A DNA stretch of 64,000 nt, taken from Trichosphaerium sp. ATCC 40318. Lineage: Eukaryota; Protista; Tubulinea. Shown piece after piece: positions 146 to 13,250 of the stretch; within the stretch, counting starts at the first letter, position 1, and each line of letters opens with the position of its first letter. The stretch spans positions 1-64,000 of the forward strand of contig JALMLS010000377.1 in the NCBI GenBank assembly GCA_038496445.1, read 5' to 3'. A program made the position numbers and the translations under genes. Under the pieces are notes generated by a model, which worked only from the letters and a program-made list of their open reading frames with translations, had not been told where the DNA came from and did no database searches.

Positions 146-2707
146 TTTAATTTTTAGACCTGAAGGCTGTGGTTTATCAGAATCTAAATAACATCAACTG
201 GTACATTGGTTTATGAAGAAAAAAAAAAAAAAATGAAAAAAAAAGGAAGGGAAAAACCAACACATCGCGATCGTGTTCGTACCGAGTACGATCGGTCTGT
301 GAGTTACTACACTTTCAAACCAAGGCTCACTTGATTTTTTGAACAACCCATGTGCTCTGCTGCTTCTTCTTGGTCTTTTTTGCAGCTGGATTTCTTCTGA
401 AACCTCATCCTCAACCTCATCCTCAACCTCATCCTCATTCTCATCTTCTTTTTCTTCAAAATCTTCTTCTTCATCTGATGTAGGAGGAGTTGTTTTAACC
501 ATAGGCTTCTTTTTCTTGCCTTTGCCTTTACCTTTTTTTTTATGCCTGTTTATGGCACTGCCTTCACTTGCCCTTGCATTGGCAGTGTTCTTGGCCCTTG
601 TATCTCTAAAAGGTAAGTAGGCATTCTCCAACATGGCTTCTAACTGAGGAGCTACAAAGGACATTAGTTTAAAAGTAAACTAGGGGAGAGAAAAAAAAAA
701 AAAAGAAAAAGAAAAGAGTACGACCGCTACGTTCGACGAACAGGCGATTCGCGTGTAGCGCCGAGCGCGACATTGGATGTGTAGTGTAAAAAAAAAAAAA
801 AATGACACTTACTTGCTTCCTCCACCTCAGGCAAATCCAAGCACTGCATAGACAACAGGGCAGTGTGAGAGAAGGAGAGCACCGTTGCTGCTTGCTTGTA
901 CTTCATCTCTTCTATAACCATCTTGGGCAATTTTTGGCCATCTTCTGTGGTGCCGGTCCAAAGCAAGTGCAGGTCGTACATCAGAAGCTGGCGAAATATA
1001 CACGGACGCAGGCTGTTCGCGAAATTCACGTGCTCCTCCTCGGTGCTCGTGTCCCACGAGAGCTCGTACCAACCGAGCTCGTTCAGCTGTCTCAAGGCCT
1101 CGAGTTAAAGTTAGATGAGGGTGGAGGGAGAAGAAAAAAAAAAAAAACAACAAAAAAAAACAACAAAAAAAAACTGACCGATTGGTTTTTTTTTTTTTTG
1201 TACCTGTGTGATATATTGGCTGCAGTTCTTGTACCTCTGCAAATAATAAGATTGATTGGTCTCATGATACACCCTGCAGGTCAGTGCCTTGACAAACTAA
1301 ATGTACAAGTTAGGCACAAACCCTTTTTTCAAAAAAAAATATAAAAGGTACTTGACTTACTGCTATTCTGGCATGGAGAGGTAACTCTGCCCATGCAGCA
1401 TGAGCCAATATTCTAGTCCTGTAGCCCACTGGATGTTTGGTGTGCTATGATGAGAGTGTGAGTGAACGGCCGAAACTTTGTATGACCACACAAAATGCGT
1501 GTTCGAATAAAGACGAAAGCCTACGTACCACATTTTCAGCAGATGCAACCAATTCTGCTATCAGAGCACTGTCCAATGGCTCAAAAAACATGCCAGCCTT
1601 AACAAACTGCTTGCTTTCTTTCCAGTTGGTCACATATGGAAAGTATAGATTCATCTTAACCAAAAACTAAACAAAACAATCAGTTATAACATACAAATAA
1701 AAAAAAAATACAAACTAAAAATCGTCGGTTTTACAACAGAGTATTTTAGTGTTCGCACGCGACCGCGAGCTCGCGGTGCGATTTACGACACGCGAAACCT
1801 CTGTTTAAAAATACTTGCGAAAAAAAAAAAAAAAGATTAAAAAAAGATTAAAAAAAAACAACCCTCACCTCTTTCCATTGAGCAGGACTGAGCTGAGGTT
1901 TGACTCTGCTGGCTCCCCATATCGCAAAATTCACCTTACCTATATCTCCCGCCTCCGCTTGGTAATCGAAGACCTGGCCCGCGTCGTCGCACCACATCTT
2001 GAACAGGTGGCGGTAGCGATCCACCTTGGAGTCTGGAGTGGTCAGACTTTGCAGAAAGTTGATCTTGGTGCAGTAGATCGCTATCGCTTGCATCTTGGCG
2101 AAAGGATTTATCCACTCCACATTTTTGATTGCAAATTTGCAGGTTTTAGCTGCATTTTGTCTAAGGCAAACAAGTAAGAAACAATTGAACAATAAGGTAA
2201 GGAAAAGTAAAAAACCAGAAAAACAAAAAAAAGGTTCGTCGTTCGAGGTTTTTTTACGACAGGAAAATCTCGTGTTCGAACGTGACCGCGAGCTCGCGGT
2301 CGGTCAACCGACACGTAAAATACGTGTTCGAAAATATTCGCGAACGTACGCCAACTCTGTCAAAAGACAGTGTGCTCCATCTCCAACTCCAAAGCCAACA
2401 ATAGGGTCTGTATTGTATTCATCACACCAAACAATAGGCATAGGGCAAAGCACAAACCTTTTGGTGAAAGTTTCATAAATAGGCATCTTTTGTATAATGT
2501 TCCTGGGGTTGACTCCTCTGACATTCAAAAAACAAGCTATGTGTGACATGTCCAAGGGGCCTTTGTAAAATGAGGGCTTCTTCACTCTCAGATACTTCTT
2601 GTTGATAGAGTTGGCAGCAATCCCTCTTAGCAAGGCCTTTTTTATTGATGACTTTATGATGCAGCCATTCAATTTATTGGTGCCTGACTTCATGTAGCTA
2701 CATAAAA

Positions 2708-2756
<49 letters not shown>

Positions 2757-4768
2757 GACGACGTTCGTTTTCGAACACGTAAAACGCGTGTTAAATAAAT
2801 ATCGCGAAAATTGTTACTTACTCCACAAAGAGATGGAAATCTGAATCATTGCCAAAGCTCAAGGAATCTCTAAAATGGACCAAAAGAAGGGCAATGTAGT
2901 ACCAAGAATCTGTGACATGAAGTCCCATGGCTGTGTAGAATATGCCAGTCCAGAGTAGCACCTGCCAATACAACTGTCTCCACTTGCAGCTTATAATCCA
3001 TCCATTCCTCTCCTTCTCCTCTACCTTCGATTCCTCATCTCCGTGTTCTCTCGGCATGGGTTCGTGCTCCTTGTAATCTCTGGTGTAGTTGCCTTCGAAG
3101 TGCATCGGCTTCCACCACTTTTCTTCATCCGAGGAGTAGATTTTTTTGACATCTTCTATAAACTTCTGCAGTTGGTCTACTCCTTCAACAAATGGAAATC
3201 TCTCCTAAAGAAACAAATTAATTAATTTAAAAAAAAAACAAAAAAAAAAAAACTAAAAGCCGACGATTTTACAACAGGATATTTAAGTGTTCGTACACGA
3301 CCGCGAGCTCGCGGTCACACGTTCGACACATGAAAACTGTGTTATGAATACTTTAGGAAAAAAAATCAAAAAATAATCAAAAAAAAAAACAGAAAAAAAA
3401 AAAAAACAAAAAAAAAAAAACGAAATAAAACGAACACGGCCCGCGCGTGTATGTATCGGAAAACGTACCTTGAATGCTGCCTTCAGCTTGTTGTTAGGAG
3501 TTATTTGGGACTCCAACACATTATCAAAGCTGGCAGCAAAAAACCCATTTAGGCATCTCTTCATCCTCTTGATGGGCATGGTTTTAGCATAAACCAACTG
3601 GTTGGCTATGATAACACCTCTACATAGATAAATTAGTTGAAATGAATTAAAAATAAAAAAAAAAACAAAAAATAAAAAAAAAATATAAATGGCAGCTACG
3701 TTTATGAACATGTGCCGCGCGTGTTGCGTCGAACGCGAACTTTAATGGGTAAAAAAAAAAAAAATGGACAAAACAAAAAAAAAAACAAAAAAACAAAACA
3801 ACCAACTTACTCAAAACCAAAGATAACATCTCTGTGTTCTCCAATAAGGGTACCCACAATTTTTGTTTCAGTATTGTGGTTTCCATGACTGCTCACAATC
3901 ATCCAACCAGGGCTTGTTGGAGCTAAAAAGAGTATTAGAAGATGGCACATTAAATAAAAATACAAACACGTTTTTTTCGTGTGGAAAATATGACCTCGAG
4001 CTCGCGGTCGGAAACAAACACATTAAATACGTGTTATGTACACAACGACAAGCTTGCAGTCAGTTATAAAGCAAGACTTTTAAAAAAAACGGTTTTTTTA
4101 AAAAGTACACACTTTTTATGTGTACGAAAACCGACCGCGAGCTCGCAGTCATATACGAACACGTAAAAAACGTGTTATAAATCGTACAGCGAGCTTGTGG
4201 TCTGTAAAAAAAGCAAAACAACAAAAAAATAATTAAAAAAAAAGTACACAATTAAATTGTGTACAAAACCAACCGCCAACTAGCGCGACATGCGAACACG
4301 CTATATACGTGTTCTAATACCGCGATGGGCTCGCTGTTGAAAATTGAAGCAAAATAAAACAGTGTGAACCAAAACCAAACGAAAAACAACGCACACGCGT
4401 TCTGCGTGTTACGAAACCCCGTTTGAGTTTGGTTCTACCATGAGAAAAAAACCGCATGGTAACGGAAAAACCGTACACATGAAAACCGTGTACAAAACCG
4501 TCGGTTTTTTTCGAAAAATTTACTTGAAAAATTAACAAATTTAGGCTTTTAAAAAAACCATCTAAAAGCAAAAAAAACCCCTTTATTAGTCTTTAAAAAT
4601 TAAAATAAGACTAATAAAGGGGGTTTTAAAAAAAAAAGAGTAAAAAAAGAGGTTAGTACCTAGTTTTTTCTTCCTCCTGAGCTTAAGCTTGCCATCAGCT
4701 TCTTTGGAGGGCTCATCCTCATCAGAAAACTCAATGTTTATTAGAGAGAGGTCTTCATCTGAGCTCAT
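146..4768 (-). CDS. Gene A: multi-exon unknown protein with degenerate ParB/Srx-like motif and acidic/basic tail; paralogue of gene B; probably continues beyond the left edge
   Basis: ATG 4768 (MSSDEDLS). GT-AG introns at about 3923-4659, 3620-3810, 3206-3468, 2698-2821, 2161-2349, 1667-1868, 1445-1528, 1296-1360, 1100-1203, 652-812 and 184-282 splice into one open frame. Exons align with gene B, e.g. MSHIACFLNVRGVN vs MSDLVCFLPVRGFN and GFGVGDGAHCLL vs GFCLGDGSHGLL. Confidence 0.8.
1762..4338. repeat. Intronic A-type palindrome family GACCGCGAGCTCGCGGTC with companion ACACG-n-CGTGT
   Basis: Copies at 1762-1777 (16-bp core), 2284-2301, 3299-3316, 3992-4009 (1 mismatch) and 4133-4150 (1 mismatch); degenerate copies centred ~4052, 4193, 4279 and 4329. 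All lie in gene A introns. Intron 1 has a ~140-bp unit repeated three times (~3965-4340). Confidence 0.92.
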
Positions 4769-5423
4769 CCTTGATTTATGAAAAGTCAAAAAAGTAAAAT
4801 GAGGCTTTTTTTCCCCCAATAATCGCGTTGAGAAATAGACAGGAAAATTTCGTGTTTCGAAATGTGAATCGAAAATTTCGCCTGTTTAAAAAAAGTAAGA
4901 AAAAATGAGAATTTGACAGTTTGCAAGATTGTTGATGAGGTTCTGGGTTTGTAAAAAACCCTATCTTGCTGTAACCCTACAGGGAGATTGTATGTGCAAA
5001 AAACATAAAAAAAAAGCCAAAAAATCCAAAAAATTTTACAACAGGGTAGAGTAGTGTACAAAAAAATGTATTTTGTTCGGGTAAAAGTGGAATGTCTTTG
5101 TATATGAGTGTGTAACAAGCATGTGCATTGGTACAGTCATGGAAAGTCAAGGAACAAAGTTAGGATTTGTGAAAAAATCAGTTTTTTTCCTTATAATATA
5201 GTTTTGTATGTTTATAATTAATTACTAAACAAACAAATTTCTATGATATAAGTTTTTCTCTCCAATTCATTATATTTTTTGTACATTATTTTTTTAATAA
5301 AAGTTCAATATTCAAAAAAAACCAAAAAAAATGCCTAAGTCGAATCATAGTAACTTCATAACATAGTATTCTCTGTTATGAAAATATCGCGGACGACGAA
5401 CTTATTTTGACTTTGATTAATTG

Positions 5424-8400
5424 ATGAGAAGCACAGCAAGGCACATACAGCTAGCCTTGAAGACATCACACACTCAGGAAGCCTCAGGGAACAAAATGGC
5501 AGCTAAAGAGCTAAAAGATAAAATAGGTACTCAAATAAATTTAAAACCTTTAAAATTAAGCTTTTAAAATTAATTTAAGGCTAATAAGCCTAAAAGAAAT
5601 CAATTTGAAGAGTTTTTTGATTTTGAGAAATTTTATAGAATTCATTGAATGTTTACTTTTGCTGACTTAAGTTTTTATGTTATATATAACATATAATATT
5701 ATATTTTGACAACGGATCGGACCGATCCGTTAGTAAAACAAAATTTTTTTTGTTTTATATTTGGATCGGACCGATCCATCACCAAAATATTCTTTTTAAA
5801 TATATTTATATTTTATATATAAATTATAAAAATAATTTTTGATAGTTGGATCGGTCCGATCCGTTATCGAAATATATTTATTTTTGTTTCGTAAACGGAT
5901 CGGACCGATCCATTATCGAAATATATTTATTTTTGTTTCGTAAACGGATCGGACCGATCCATTTTCGAAATATATATTTGTTTGTTTCGTAAACGGATCG
6001 GTCCGATCCATTATCATAATATTATTTATTTTTTTTATATTTGATTTAATATCTTTATTAGGAGAGGGTTGGCTTTGTATTGCAAAAGAAGATCATTATG
6101 ACACTTCCAGAAAGCTACAAGAATATATAACTCAATATGGTGCTGTAGTGGATGGTAATGGTGAAAGATATGGGTTTATGTAAGTCAATACATTATAATA
6201 TATATACTCACTCATTTATAGTGAATATCACAAAGGTGCTACAGGTCTTTTTGCAAAATTGATGCCATGGAGTGTATTCGAGACCTTATTATGTAAATGT
6301 TTTGGTGAGACATTAGAGGAATTAGAGGTTAAAATTAAAGAGGACAAAAACTTTATTAATGATATAAGAGTAAGTATTACCATATCAGGCTATACTAATT
6401 GAGTTAGGCACACTTACCATTTCTTACAAATAACAAACAACCAATTGAATTTATAGATGCCATACAATCAGATTATAAAGCATCTCCAAAAAGGTGGTTT
6501 AACCCTGTTAAAAGAAAAGCAGCTGAGACAGATGAAGCCTTTTTTACACGATTTTCCAGAAGAAAGCACATTTGGAGTCTTCTAATCAAACTTGAACTAT
6601 TTCCAAAAGCTGTTGGTCTACAACTTGCTAATGGTAACCACTATAAAGGGTTTTTAATGAAATACTACAGAAAGTCTTTGATGATATCAACTATGAAAGA
6701 GACAGATAATTATCAAAAGTATGTATTAGTTTATTACAATTAGTTAATCTACTATAGGTATTTGATGACAACTGGCCCAAGTTGTTTTACATTACCTGAT
6801 AATTACCAAGAATTATTTGACGAAGATGATCATTTTATTGATATCAGTAATAAAACATACACACCGGCAGAAAAAGCAAAAAGTTTGACAGTTCCATCAA
6901 TGTCAGACCTTGTGTGCTTTTTACCAGTCAGAGGTTTTAATTTAGAGAACTTTTTATTACAAATGGCAGCAGCTACAGAAGCAAGTCCACCACACAATAG
7001 AAAAATATTATTGGTCGAAAGTGGCACTTTATATGTACCAGGTGGAAGGAAAGGAAAACCTCAAGTTCATCCTGGTTTTTGTCTTGGTGATGGCTCTCAT
7101 GGTTTACTAGCATCTTTATGGTACAAATACTCATACACAATAACTAATATTTATTTTAGTATTTTGAAAAAGGATTTTCAATTAAAAACTGTGGGTTGGT
7201 TGTCTGTGCGTGTGAGATTAAATAGCATTATATCCTTTTGTGCAGCATGGAACAAATTGGGACAGGCCACAAAAGATAGTCATCTTTTAGATAAAATGAT
7301 ATTTTGTTATGATAAATTTTGTGAACAGTATGGATTAGAAAAAGTACGATATCAATATAAATCATATCATTTAACTAAATGTAGAATGGCGATTTTTCTG
7401 TGACAAGAAAGTCTCCTAAAAAACCTGGTGTAACTTTTCAATCAGTAAGATTATTTTTATTTTCTATTGTACTAATAGTTTAGGTGTATAACTTTTGTGA
7501 TCTTGGAGTGTCAAACCTAGTAAGAACTCCCAGAGAGTTTAAATTGATTGTAAGAGGAGGGGCTTTTTTGCATGGTATAGATAAAGATCTTATTGAATTG
7601 ATGGGTTTACAAGCAACCTCAGTACAAATAGTTGCACATGCACATAACTACTAACTATCTCTATAGTTAAATAGACTGCCTACAGGCTTTAATCAAAGAT
7701 GGTTTGGAGATATATTTTGGGCTAAAGCTCCTAAAAGGATGAGAATAGCAGTACGTACAAAGTTCAAACATTAGCAAAACTAAATTTGTAATAAAATACG
7801 TGCTGTTTTATCAACGGATCGGACCGATCCGTTTACGTAATATATCTTATAATGTTTCGTCAACGGATCGGACCGATCCGTATACGTAATATATCTTATA
7901 ATGTTTCGCCAACGGATCGAACCGATCCGTTTACGTAATATATCTTTCTATGTTTTATTAACATGTCAAACTGATTTGTAGAAAAAAGTTAATATGTTGT
8001 ACTTATTAATATGTTTAGTTTTTAAAAGCTGTTGGAAATAGACAGTATACATGTGATCCCAAAGCTAAACAGAAGTTTAAACAATACATAAATGCAAAAA
8101 ACACACTAGAAGCTGTACAATTTTTTTCAATAACACAATATTAACATATATTTGTAGTTATGGGACTTTGTTAAAACACACTTGAAACAAGACCCTTTAA
8201 CACACAGAGATATCATGGCTTTAGATGATACAAATCACCTAAAAAGGCTATACACATTTGACCCCACCCTATTATTTCCTCCTGCAGAAGGTTGGCCACC
8301 AGCAAAAGATAAAGACCATCCTTTGGCTCAACAAAGAAAAAGCACAGAGGAATTAAACTATTCAAATGATTCAGTAACAGTGGCAATGGGTTATAATTGC

Positions 8401-9449
8401 TTACAAGCATATGACAGCTATTATTCTGAGCACAAGCATATTAGTATACACTTTCAATTTATAATATTAATACTAAATATATACTAGGAAAAACACTTCA
8501 TAGCAGAGTTATTGAAAATATGAAGAAATACAAGGAAAAAAAGCAGAAACAAACAAAGTCAGCTAGACAAAGCAGAAAACCATTAACTGACCATGAAAAA
8601 GCTGCTACATCTCATTGGAGCAAACATTATGGTAAAGACAAGACAACATTGGCAGGTAAAACATCATTTTATACATTTAAATACATAACTATTTGTAGCC
8701 AAAGTAAAAGTATATGATAATTACTTAAAAGACAAAAAAGATTCTCATCAATCTAATAAATCCAGCGAAAATGCTGATATTGTTGTTGATGATGATGATG
8801 ATGTGGATATGCAAGATGTAAACACTTCAAGTTCAACAAAAAGAACCTCTACAAAGGCACAAAAAACATCAAGTAGAAAAACAAAACAGAAAGAGGAAGA
8901 AGATGAGTCATCTTCATCATCAACAGAACATGACAGAGAAGATAATGAATTTAATCCTTCAGATTCTGAACAAAACATTGATGATGTTTCAAAAAAAAAT
9001 ACAGATTCTATGTTTGAGCCATCTCAATCTAAAAATGTTGAAGAACAAATGACAATGGTTATAGATAAAATATTGGAAATTGGAGAATTTGTTTCTTATT
9101 CAAAACCAGAAGATTCAAATGTTGTGCAAATCACAATTGATGTACATCCTAGCAATGTTGCATATCAAAAACTTATTTCTAGTAAGTAATACAAAATATA
9201 TCCATATTTATAATATTAGGTACTCCTTTTATACAATCACAAAGGCAAATAGAACATACACCAAGTTATGATGAAAGTGAAAATGACAGTGAAAATGAAG
9301 ATGATGAAGAAGAAGAAGAAAAAGATGTGCAAAAAGGACCTGATATACAGCGAATATCTCCAAGGAAAACACAAAAAAAGAGAAAGCCTGGAAAACCACC
9401 AAAAGGCCAACCAACAAAGAAAAAAAGAAAAAGAATTGCAAAAAAATGA
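5424..9449 (+). CDS. Gene B: multi-exon unknown protein with degenerate ParB/Srx-like motif and acidic then basic C-terminal tail; transposon accessory gene
   Basis: ATG 5424. Introns at about 5527-6061, 6180-6221, 6370-6408, 6719-6757, 7121-7159, 7344-7385, 7445-7483, 7622-7666, 7751-8018, 8115-8157, 8444-8487, 8656-8698 and 9185-9219 give a continuous frame to TGA 9447-9449 (…KKKRKRIAKK*). Confidence 0.82.
5711..6010. repeat. B-type palindrome array 1 (6 x GGATCGGWCCGATCC) in gene B intron 1
   Basis: Cores start at 5714, 5763, 5848, 5897, 5946 and 5995, giving spacings 49, 85, 49, 49, 49. Confidence 0.95.
7813..7931. repeat. B-type palindrome array 2 (3 copies, 49-bp period) in the gene B intron at 7751-8018
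   Basis: Cores start at 7816, 7865 and 7914 (the last has one mismatch). The spacer differs from array 1 but the period is again 49. Confidence 0.95.
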
Positions 9450-9515
9450 ACACAGTATATGAAGATGTGATATATTTTGTTAGTTAGAAAAATTAAAATA
9501 AAATTTATTTACTTT

Positions 9516-12474
9516 TTACACATGATGTACTCTGTTTTCTATATCTGGTCCTCCAATAAATGCTGTTTGATCATCATTTGTATTTTCCATTTCTCTAATA
9601 ATAGCATCTTCATCTACATCCATGTTGGAATTGTGCTTTAGAATATCACTTATTGTAGGTTGTTCTTCATATCCATCAATTGTGTATTGTTCTCTATGAA
9701 ACAAATTCCATAAATCATTCTCTGGTGGTGGAGTATAGACTGTATCTGTTCTACCTTTAGGTGGACGACTGGCAGGCTTAGGATACAATGTAGTGGGACT
9801 TGTTGTATCTAGTTGAAATTGGCGTGCAAGACTGTATATATCCCAAGCTTTGTTTGGTTTAAGTACTCGTTTGTTTACAACCATTTGTTTTGTATCTTCA
9901 TCAAATGTAGAATAAGTGCAAGGCAAGTTGCTGAAAAAAACCAATGGTGTATTTTTTGCTCTACTGTTGTGCATATCAAAGATATGTTTTTTTGCTCCTA
10001 TTGCTATTTCTGATGTAGCTACCATGTGCACCTTGCCATTGGTTCCTTTTAAAATCCTATGGGGAAAAAACATGTAAGTTATACACTTTAACAGAATGCA
10101 TACATTATTTCTGCCATTCCTCTTAAGTGTAGTGCTTTTTTATTGCCTTCAGTATCTTTACTTGGTGTTCTCCATCTTTTAATGAAAGGTTTGATATTTT
10201 TAAATTCAGGTTGTTTCATTTCTACTCCACTCACATTTTCAGGTGCATTATATAAATCATGTATGTGTTGCATAGTAGTAAGCTCCCTGTACATGAAGTT
10301 AATCTTTTTTAACAATACAATTGTATGTAAAAATATACCTTGTGGATGATGCTAGCCTGACAGTGGCAAAAGCACGATCATTAGGCAAAAATGTATGGCC
10401 AATTCGTAAATACCTCAAAGTTACAGATAGAAACATATTTCTATCAACAAGCTCGCAATAAAACTTTATCAGCTCCCAACATTTGTTTTGAGCTGTGCAA
10501 TTATCAGACCACATCACCAAGTGCCTTTTTTTATTCTTTATGGACATAAGATGCTTGTAAATCACAGAAATAGTTTGATGCGCCTTTTTTTCTCCTATAT
10601 ATTCAGACCAATAATAGATTGTAGTTTGTTTTGTGCTAGCATCATAGATGCCAAGTGGATTTATTGATAGTGACCTAAGCTCTCAAAATTAGTCTTATGA
10701 TTGTAACTTTATAATACTTTTTTGTACCTCAAATAAAATTGTATCTGTGGTTGGTCTTTAAACTTTGGCATGCTTGTCATTTGCATATAATCTATTGACA
10801 ACACTGTGGATGTGGCTCTTTTCCAAGTCTCATACAAATGCCAAGTATCATAGTAACGTGGATTAAAAAGGCCAATATTTTTTGTTGTGTGAAATGAAGG
10901 CTCACTTTCATATCCCTCCCAACTTACTAAATATCGAACATCTGTAATTTTACGCTTTTTTCTTCTTTTTCTTAGTGGAGGGGCCTTTCGTTTTTTAGTA
11001 TTACTTTGTGGTAAAATTGAGTGTTGATCAATCTCTGTTCTGGTGTGCACAGTCATACCCAATATGCCATTTATGAAATACTCTTTGTTTTCATCTTCTA
11101 TTGTACCATATTGCCAGCCTACTGGATTGTTATACCAATCTGCATGTCCATTTGTTTTAATTGCACTTTTCCAATAACTTTCTAACTCTATAATATCTTT
11201 CACATTTTGTTTCATATATAACAGTGCAGGTAGTTTTAATTTAGTTTGAGTTTCTTCATCAGTGTGTTTTAATTCTTCTCCCATATCAAAACGCATAAAT
11301 TCAGTACGTCTTGTTGCTATTGCATGGTGTATAAACTGTCGTTCTTTTAAAGCTTTTCTTTGTTGGATAGTTATTGTTCTGTCTGCATATTTGCATTTAT
11401 ACCAAAAACAAATGTTACATGCATCTTCTCGAGGTTTTTTGAATTTAAACACACCTTTTGTATATTCCATAAAATATCTACAATAAAAATAAACTTTACA
11501 ACAATCATCAATAAATACCTGTGAAATGTACTATATGAAAGTACATTATTGTTTGGATCAATGTTTGGATAATTTTCCATATCTTCTTCAGCAGGCATTG
11601 CTTTGTGCCAGTTATTTTCCTTGATTAAATTTTTGTACATAATTGTTTCAGTAAGACCTACTGAAAAATACCAGTATGTTTTATAATTTGCCAAAGCATA
11701 ATGACTTTTTTGTACTCTGTGTTTTTTTATGAAGGTATGTATTGTTTTTATCATAGTAGCACTTTTTCTAAATATTTTATAAGTTTAGACAACAAAAAAC
11801 AGAATGTTATATAGACGGATCGGTCCGATCCGTTAACGAAACATACAATATATTGTTATGACAAATATTTATTGTAAGCTTATAAGTGATGGATCGGTCC
11901 GATCCGTATACATAACAGATGATGCGTAGTTACTTCAATCAAACGAGTACCTATTTGATTTATTATTGTGATAGCCTCTTTTATCTTCAACAAATCCTAG
12001 TTTTTCTGTTCTAAACTTATTGATTGAATGCAATGGCCCATGACTTATGCCATATACACTTTTAAAAAAAGAACAACATACTTTTTGTTTAGTGCCATTT
12101 CCATAAAATATATAATAATTATTTGATGTTTTTCCCTCTTTTTGATATATCCCTCTGTTCAAAATACCAATTTTATCCTTATAACTACCAGCAAAGTAAT
12201 AAATAGCTTTTAAAGCATATAAGTAATCTTTGTCAAATTTGCTCCAACATTGTCCATTACATTTACATCTATGTATCTTTTTTTCCATGAATTTTTCCCA
12301 ATTTTCATCAGTACATTTTTCTGGTTTAATCACTTCTTTGAAATCTACACACAATGTTTCATTTTCTGCTTGTTTTGAAATTAATTGACTTTCATTGAAT
12401 ATTCCTGGATTTGTCCCCCACTCTTTAATGCTCTCAATAGCTTCTTCAGCTAAAGGAAAGTCTTTTAAATACAT
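9516..12474 (-). CDS. Gene C: Sola-like DDD cut-and-paste transposase with an internal chromodomain
   Basis: Spliced frame (introns about 11768-11950, 11478-11518, 10675-10727, 10304-10360, 10058-10103) gives KVCCSFFKSVYGIS, DKRGYH, KSHY, KFKKPREDACNIC, SIDYMQ, WSDNCTAQNK and YLRIGHTFLPNDRAF. I recall this motif series from Sola1-type transposases. No stops or frameshifts seen. Confidence 0.85.
11815..11908. repeat. B-type palindrome pair in transposase intron 1
   Basis: GGATCGGTCCGATCC starts at 11817 and 11891. Confidence 0.95.
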
Positions 12475-12687
12475 TTCAATGGTAAGATGCTGTCATGCTG
12501 GTTGTTGAAAAGTATGTTATTAAGTTTGACATTACTTAATTGCCTCAAATTTTCGAAAATACCAAAACAGTTTATATTGTGTTATACTAGTAATACATAT
12601 GCTCAAAAAAATTTTATTTCATTTTTACCCGAAAGTTTCTCAAATACGGTTGGTACATACTCCTAAACTCTAAATCCTAATTGGCTT

Positions 12688-12933
12688 CTAGGGTATAAAC
12701 CCTAATCATTATTTTAATCTATTAGGGCTAGGGTTTTGTGCTCTATTGAATCTTAAATTAGGGTTAGGGTTATAACCCTAATGATTAGACAGATTAGTTT
12801 GGATTAGGGCTAGGGTTAGGTTTACAACCCTAACTATTGTTAAAAGTTAGACGATGATTAGGGCTAGGGTTAGGGCAAGGTTCAGTAATCAGCAAACCCT
12901 AATTTACATTAGGGCTAGGGTTATGCTTTAGGG
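12688..12933. repeat. Interrupted telomere-like (T/C)TAGGG repeats mixed with inverted AACCCTA
   Basis: ATTAGGGCTAGGGTT-type blocks at ~12721, 12757, 12803, 12857 and 12908, alternating with AACCCTA(A) at ~12698, 12774, 12826 and 12895. Confidence 0.85.
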
Positions 12934-13250
12934 ATAGGAATAGTTCTGAGATATCTTGTACTATGTTTTTGAACCTTACTTTCTTTCATGTCTACTTAGA
13001 TATTTTTACTGTATTTATGTACTATTATTTCAACATTGATGATTGTACAATAAATGGTTTACATATTATCACTTTAACTAAATGTTTGTATTTCACTATG
13101 GTATACATTTATGTACTTTATCTATTACATGTTATGCAAACCACAGCGTTATGTACATATTAAATTTTACTATTTACTTGTATTTACACAGCATACACGA
13201 TACAAAACAGCCACCAATAAATATTAATTAAACATAGCACTTATGAGCTT

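Follow-up and report, generated by a model that had tools for sequence, protein, structure and literature searches.

A conserved two-exon core shared by putative accessory genes of a DUF7869 transposon lineage in Trichosphaerium

In the first 64 kb of contig C46 (JALMLS010000377.1) of the 70-Mb genome assembly of Trichosphaerium sp. ATCC 40318, which is AT-rich and has short introns, two genes, here named A and B, share a conserved coding block; this whole stretch of 64,000 nucleotides is called the window below. A human or contaminant source was considered and dismissed, the contig having short introns. The block is a real coding domain under purifying selection, and its family is an orphan as far as search tools see, with no detectable relatives. 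We give a probability of about 0.5 to the reading that the block is the globular core, ~135 residues over two exons, of a selectively maintained and lineage-restricted accessory protein whose genes travel in a family of DUF7869 (Sola-like) cut-and-paste DNA transposons and in elements derived from them. The description that fits genes A and B best is that of a new orphan family of accessory proteins in this transposon lineage. An earlier reading from the sequence alone (the sequence-only reading) had placed a diverged, possibly catalytically altered domain of the ParB/sulfiredoxin (Srx) fold in these genes; as the evidence stands, the ParB label should not go on them.

Results

The common block is collinear in gene B (plus strand, 6900-7343) and gene A (minus strand, 1935-2555) and is divided over two predicted exons. 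The first follows the pattern MS.I.CF..VRG.N..N ... GF..GDG(A/S)H.LL..L and the second F..K.V.W.N.F...I..(Y/F)C...N...T.D..D(K/R), and the motifs VRG.N, GDG(S/A)H and N...D(K/R), which the sequence-only reading had picked out in both genes, lie where it had put them (Table 1). Between the two exons, a phase-2 intron is predicted at the matching place in A and B, two bases past LL..L. The two halves of the block are closer together than had been assumed, with a gene B intron of only 39 nt, and the stretch F.(I/L)K.V.W(I/L)N.F, just ahead of I..(Y/F)C, is coding and conserved. The gene B intron is in frame and stop-free, and therefore an open reading frame (ORF) at 6762-7403 runs through it. A stop-free in-frame intron was also seen in some A copies (L008 1501-2436, L012 1501-2394), giving read-through ORFs of 213-311 amino acids. 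Exon 1 of gene B would start upstream of its conserved part, near 6744-6758. Acidic and lysine-rich tails close the proteins of both genes.

By BLASTP, exon 1 of gene A matched that of gene B with 31% identity over 91 amino acids (E 5e-7), and the exon 2 pair gave E 0.017. Six-frame searches of the genome revealed three additional paralogue types, A', C and D, which bridge A and B, and the family profile found every paralogue type in the genome at E 1e-23 to 1e-48. The similarity between A and B is beyond chance, because it was detected by BLASTP in both exons, is accompanied by collinearity and an intron of the same phase, and extends to three more paralogue types. Alignments of the paralogues gave a family signature that starts with MS.I.CF..VR(G/S).N..N, followed by ~20 residues, K..(L/V)L and a loop of variable length, continues with G(F/Y)...DG(A/S/T)H.LL..L before the intron and resumes after it with F.(I/L)..... 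W(I/L/F)N.F...(M/L)..I..(Y/F)C...N......T.D..(V/L)D(K/R). Sixteen exon 1 residues are invariant across the types (M47, S48, C52, F53, V56, R57, N60, N63, L84, G105, D110, G111, H113, L115, L116 and L119), as are W, C and D of exon 2 in 5/5 types. Among 14 A copies, variable sites made up 4.8% of the exons and 14.7% of the intron, and 17 changes were synonymous and seven non-synonymous, one of the latter falling in the conserved core of exon 1. This difference between exons and intron, together with the excess of synonymous changes, shows that the block is a real coding domain under purifying selection.

The setting inside a spliced eukaryotic transposon gene, as the sequence-only reading had it, was borne out by sharp boundaries, a 4-bp target-site duplication (TSD), a DUF7869 gene and near-identical copies, with the splicing itself predicted from the sequence. 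Gene B lies within element B, which is flanked by AAAT at 5064-5067 and 12642-12645. A search of the genome DNA found seven uninterrupted A copies, that is, empty sites, in which position 5067 adjoins 12642 with a 4-bp overlap; the segment 5068-12641 is therefore an insertion with AAAT as its target duplication. Element B has a subterminal inverted repeat (TTCGGGTAAAA.TG) and near-identical copies on four other contigs (C411, C578, C610 and C602), and it carries gene B on the plus strand and a convergent, putatively spliced transposase gene on the minus strand. DUF7869 matches were obtained in six frames in all B copies and beside the D-type gene; at both D-type loci (C475 and C529) the accessory gene stands ~3.5 kb from the DUF7869 gene in the same convergent layout. 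Gene B thus belongs to a two-gene cut-and-paste element with defined ends, a TSD and a transposase gene, and the pairing recurs at the D-type loci. We call the linked transposase Sola-like; its TSD of 4 bp was observed, DUF7869 was the sole family matched, and we found no paper mentioning DUF7869. The core exon of the D-type copy (C475:13594-13851; L060 2583-2939; also C529) is interrupted by an in-frame TAA, with a stop-free DUF7869 exon alongside, and the accessory gene of this copy is probably decaying. More remnants of DUF7869 transposases, with internal stop codons, occur on C450, C483, C495 and C624, where no copy of the accessory family was detected.

Element A, into which element B is inserted, has kept its accessory gene and its palindromes, and no transposase gene was found in it. 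Its end (12660-12940) is made up of telomere-like TTAGGG/CTAGGG runs opposite runs of CCCTAA, which form short hairpin-like units, and many A copies are located at contig ends, the window itself being a contig start. Positions 1-162 of the window are occupied by a ~163-bp repeat with internal inverted repeats (AAGTGGTATATACCACTT...) and many near-identical copies in the genome, several of which abut elements A or B (C578:6702-6865, C411:24847-25010).

In all five paralogue types, the gene co-occurs strictly with a type-specific perfect palindrome of 15-22 bp, which is arrayed inside the element, often in introns and often at a spacing of 49 bp (Table 1). The B palindrome has 36 sites in the whole genome, all on contigs with element B, and the C palindrome has 50, nearly all on contigs with C-type genes; reversed-pattern controls for these two genome searches gave 0 matches each. 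The A, A' and C palindromes have a common GAGCTC centre, the B palindrome contains two GATC sites and the D palindrome contains GATATC.

Table 1. Positions in the window of the conserved block, the elements and the palindromes, followed by the paralogue types. Exons and introns are predicted. Palindromes by type: loci L027, L032, L046 and L060.
Feature	Position	Strand	Details
Gene B core exon 1, conserved part	6900-7120	+	opens with MSDLVCFLPVRGFN at 6900; MSDLVCFLPVRGFN..N...K.LL...GFCLGDGSHGLLASL; donor GTACAA at 7121, phase 2
Gene B VRG	6927-6935	+	
Gene B GDGSH	7086-7100	+	
Gene B putative intron	7121-7159	+	phase 2; from GT..AG sites, frame and paralogue alignment
Gene B core exon 2	7160-7343	+	(C)ILKKDFQLKTVGWLSVRVRLNSIISFCAAWNKLGQATKDSHLLDKMIFCYDKFCEQYGLEK; donor GT at 7344
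Gene B N...D(K/R) block	7248-7295	+	WNKLGQATKDSHLLDK
Gene A core exon 1	2350-2693	-	...DMSHIACFLNVRGVNPRNIIQKM...KRFVLCP...VGFGVGDGAHCLLTEL; donor GTACGT at 2349-2344, phase 2
Gene A VRG	2514-2522	-	
Gene A GDGAH	2370-2384	-	
Gene A putative intron	2161-2349	-	189 nt, phase 2, same position as gene B intron
A-type palindrome in gene A intron	2286-2299		one; CCGCGAGCTCGCGG
Gene A core exon 2	1935-2160	-	(A)QNAAKTCKFAIKNVEWINPFAKMQAIAIYCTKINFLQSLTTPDSKVDRYRHLFKMW...
Gene A N...D(K/R) block	2016-2063	-	INFLQSLTTPDSKVDR
Element B	5068-12641		7.57-kb cut-and-paste transposon nested in element A
Transposase exon of element B	10299-10565	-	Pfam DUF7869 (PF25273), E 6.4e-11, above curated cut-off
Element A	162-5067, resumes 12642 to ~12874		repeat, at least 15 copies; carries gene A
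B-type array	5714-6009		six GGATCGG(A/T)CCGATCC palindromes, mostly 49 bp apart
Other B-type sites	7816-7928; 11817-11905		three; two
A-type palindromes in element A	1763, 2286, 3301, 3994, 4135		five
Type A			at least 15 copies, 90-100% identical; palindrome GACCGCGAGCTCGCGGTC
Type A'			C52; 48% identity to A; palindrome GGTCGCGAGCTCGCGACC
Type B			5 copies; palindrome ACGGATCGGWCCGATCCGT, as pattern ACGGATCGG(A/T)CCGATCCGT
Type C			C574, C57, C627, C609, C28, C63, C629; ~40% identity to A; palindrome TACGTTCCGAGCTCGGAACGTA
Type D			C475, C529; in-frame TAA, probably dead copy; palindrome AAAACGATATCGTTTT

Relatives of the core were sought with single exons or natural read-through ORFs (6762-7343 of the window; 1501-2250 of locus L008) as queries, and no joined spliced protein was used. 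With 18 exon pieces, Pfam gave DUF7869 on the transposase, low-complexity noise on the acidic tail and nothing else. PHROGs and NCBIfam assigned no family to the exons or the read-through ORFs at permissive thresholds, and the ParB_N model (PF02195), run in six frames over the whole genome, had no match at E up to 10. HMMER gave 0 matches at E up to 0.001 in a set of 1.84 billion representative proteins. Similarly, there was no match in a word-indexed protein search with the exon 1 profile (proteins of 65-208 amino acids), no usable match in the ESM Atlas, no relative in scans of metagenome and viral contigs, and nothing significant among PDB sequences. The sequence-only reading had held that assignment to some other family by profile searches would speak against a ParB/Srx domain, and no other family was assigned. 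It had also suggested looking for a helix-turn-helix (HTH) in the following exons, where Pfam recognised none; in 16 pieces of the exons of genes A and B, no Pfam family at all was found, neither a methyltransferase nor another partner domain. The idea that GDG.HCLL is OTU-like was dropped, because B has G and D has T in place of the Cys after the His.

The ParB/Srx reading was examined with comparison profiles for ParB-N (from 23 chromosomal ParB genes beside parS sites), DndB, GmrSD-N and a mixed ParB_N, against a core family with a depth of ~4-5 effective sequences. When both exons were compared with the ParB-N, DndB and GmrSD-N profiles by hhalign, the probability was 0.1-0.6% (P 0.1-0.74), and the sole stretch aligned with DndB and GmrSD-N was f.v.DGaH, against flinDGQHR and vIDGQQR, respectively, with a chance-level score; this is the very motif on which the sequence-only reading had fixed. 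The upstream VR(G/S).N..N and the downstream N...T.D..DK are conserved in the family, and hhalign paired neither with the ParB, DndB or GmrSD motifs (Box I, QR, Box III). In control comparisons with thin profiles, hhalign gave 0.1% for ParB-N and DndB, 11-69% for ParB-N and GmrSD-N, and 82% for DndB and GmrSD-N.

Structure prediction with AlphaFold and a fold search, which the sequence-only reading had recommended for the spliced proteins, was carried out on the single-exon and read-through queries. The predicted local distance difference test (pLDDT) score of AlphaFold2 was 38.8 for the B read-through ORF with paralogue rows and 46.7 for a compact C-type exon. The fold search with the latter, low-confidence model returned no ParB or Srx chain, and no confident other fold emerged. 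The order of elements in these low-confidence models may be strand, helix, strand, strand(s), helix.

The residue following the His is C in types A, A' and C, G in B and T in D, in agreement with the sequence-only reading, which had noted G in B and C in A in place of arginine. The arginine of the P-motif (GxxR, DG.HR) is thus absent in 5/5 paralogue types, and Box II in its defining form was not found. In tested ParB-fold proteins, R-to-A mutants lose binding of nucleoside triphosphate (NTP) (PMC12704722).

Discussion

At about even odds, the conserved block may well form the structural core of a factor that acts as a dimer and binds its own element's palindromes. A palindrome-binding dimer is favoured because each paralogue type has its own palindromes, the accessory protein is the one subfamily-specific protein that all element types have, and the A and B proteins have charged tails. 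In the mechanism we propose, the accessory protein would enter the nucleus, as the acidic and lysine-rich tails suggest, dimerise and recognise its own element by binding to the palindrome arrays specific to the element subfamily. Binding might mark or organise the copies of the element for the transposase, or protect them, in parallel with TnpA of En/Spm and the Myb-like second protein of PIF/Harbinger. A nucleotide-driven clamp of ParB type or a nuclease is unlikely, since no paralogue has the P-motif arginine. If the core does read element-specific palindromes, five natural, diverged protein-site pairs of one family are present in one genome, and they would make a compact system for studies of the co-evolution of accessory proteins with their sites and of how non-autonomous copies stay recognisable. 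The core further exemplifies an orphan domain under selection in a poorly sampled eukaryotic lineage.

Several points weigh against an accessory protein that reads palindromes. We infer its DNA binding, dimer formation, nuclear location and role in transposition. Pfam found no recognisable DNA-binding domain in any exon of genes A and B, and the transposase could be the reader of the palindromes instead in the B and D elements. The splicing of both genes is deduced from the sequence, and no transcript-derived protein of the family turned up in protein collections. The A'- and C-type contigs are short and could hide a linked transposase. Finally, the Cys, His, Asp, Arg and Asn residues that are conserved would be compatible with an enzyme or a metal site as well.

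The next reading, which we regard as unlikely, makes the core a ParB/Srx-fold domain that has diverged strongly, belongs to the DG.HR type (like those of DndB, GmrSD-N and ParB-like nucleases) and has lost the P-motif arginine. By this account, nucleotide binding and hydrolysis would be gone, and the domain would still serve as N-terminal module in a protein whose targets are parS-like palindromes. The hydrophobic strand, DG.H and helix of the core (GFGVGDGAHCLLTEL; AVIDGTHTSLSSL in type D) resemble flINDGQHR and vIDGQQRLTTL, an Arg loop is conserved 42-53 residues upstream of DG.H, the strand and helix order suggested by the low-confidence models is compatible, and each paralogue has its own palindrome arrays. 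In addition, ParB-like accessory proteins are already known in eukaryotic DNA transposons, and this precedent raises the prior for the reading. However, the ParB_N model had no match at E up to 10, and Pfam, PHROGs and NCBIfam gave none; the hhalign probability did not exceed 0.6%, with the upstream Arg motif left unpaired to either Box I or QR; the GxxR arginine, on which NTP binding depends in the members tested (PMC12704722), is replaced by C, G or T in every type; and there is neither a methyltransferase or other partner domain nor a ParB/Srx chain in the fold search of the low-confidence model. ParB/Srx membership is thus unsupported by any test (library scans, hhalign or fold search), and one defining feature, the P-motif arginine, is lacking. 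The resemblance consists of the DG.H strand-plus-helix motif and a strand and helix order that, judging from low-confidence models, would be compatible. These results do not refute the ParB/Srx reading, because the tests are of low power, with few effective sequences and a control comparison of ParB-N with DndB that also gave 0.1%. A bolder version, in which a degenerate ParB-like transposon protein lost its nucleotide switch and diversified together with parS-like arrays into five protein-site pairs in one genome, is quite improbable. If the ParB link were true, the recently recognised ParB-like accessory proteins known from algal transposons would gain a variant that lacks the nucleotide-binding arginine, and the degenerate version would be a eukaryotic, transposon-borne counterpart of the bacterial ParB-parS specificity systems.

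Other DNA transposons carry accessory nucleases and proteases, and the core could likewise be a new enzyme or metal-binding domain, for instance a nuclease or peptidase that aids transposition, though the chance of this appears small. Its site, catalytic or zinc-binding, would be formed by the invariant Cys of CF, the Asp and His of DG.H and the Cys of exon 2, an equally doubtful assignment. C52, R57, N60, N63, D110 and H113, together with W, C and D of exon 2, are invariant across diverged paralogues, and non-synonymous changes avoid the core, as expected of such a site. Against this, no catalytic family was matched, the Cys that stands next to the His in the OTU-like GDG.HCLL is replaced by G in type B and by T in type D, and the paralogue-specific palindromes are left unexplained.

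Last, and very unlikely, the genes might be a host multigene family in repeat-rich, possibly subtelomeric blocks copied by recombination and not transposon genes at all: the contig-end position of many A copies and of the window, the telomere-like TTAGGG/CCCTAA hairpins that close element A and the lack of a transposase gene in that element speak for it, but gene B is part of an insertion that shows a 4-bp target duplication and brings its own transposase gene, the two-gene layout recurs in type D, and contig ends are expected at any repeat.

The preferred reading, an orphan accessory protein of a DUF7869 transposon lineage, can be compared with three known systems. With proteins of the ParB/Srx (ParB-CTPase fold) superfamily (especially DndB and GmrSD-N, the latter equal to DUF262), genes A and B have in common the hydrophobic strand leading to DG.H and then a helix, a conserved Arg loop ~45-55 residues upstream, a secondary-structure order that may be compatible, and ties to mobile elements and palindromic DNA sites. 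They differ from these proteins in the absence of significant sequence or profile similarity, in the replacement of the P-motif arginine by C, G or T, in equivalents of Box I and Box III that hhalign left unaligned, and in having no recognisable HTH or partner domain.

In the Ectocarpus transposon Sola1-1_Ec32, an accessory protein with ParB-like and DNA-methyltransferase parts is encoded on the opposite strand to its transposase (PMC12477816), and chlorophytes and chytrids have related ParB-HTH-Dam fusions (PMC4738411). The Ectocarpus element resembles ours in being a eukaryotic DNA transposon with an accessory gene opposite the transposase strand, whose product is proposed to bind the transposon's own DNA. 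On the other hand, the ParB and methyltransferase domains of Sola1-1_Ec32 and the ParB-HTH-Dam fusions are detectable with databases, whereas neither is found in genes A and B, and our transposase matches DUF7869.

TnpA of En/Spm and the Myb-like protein of PIF/Harbinger are DNA-binding accessory proteins of two-gene DNA transposons. As in our elements, a second element-encoded protein is paired there with repeated short internal motifs, and non-autonomous derivatives keep the motifs. No sequence relationship connects them with genes A and B, and the motifs here are arrays of perfect palindromes of 15-22 bp, many of them in introns. Moreover, the non-autonomous element A differs from those derivatives in that it retains the accessory gene itself.

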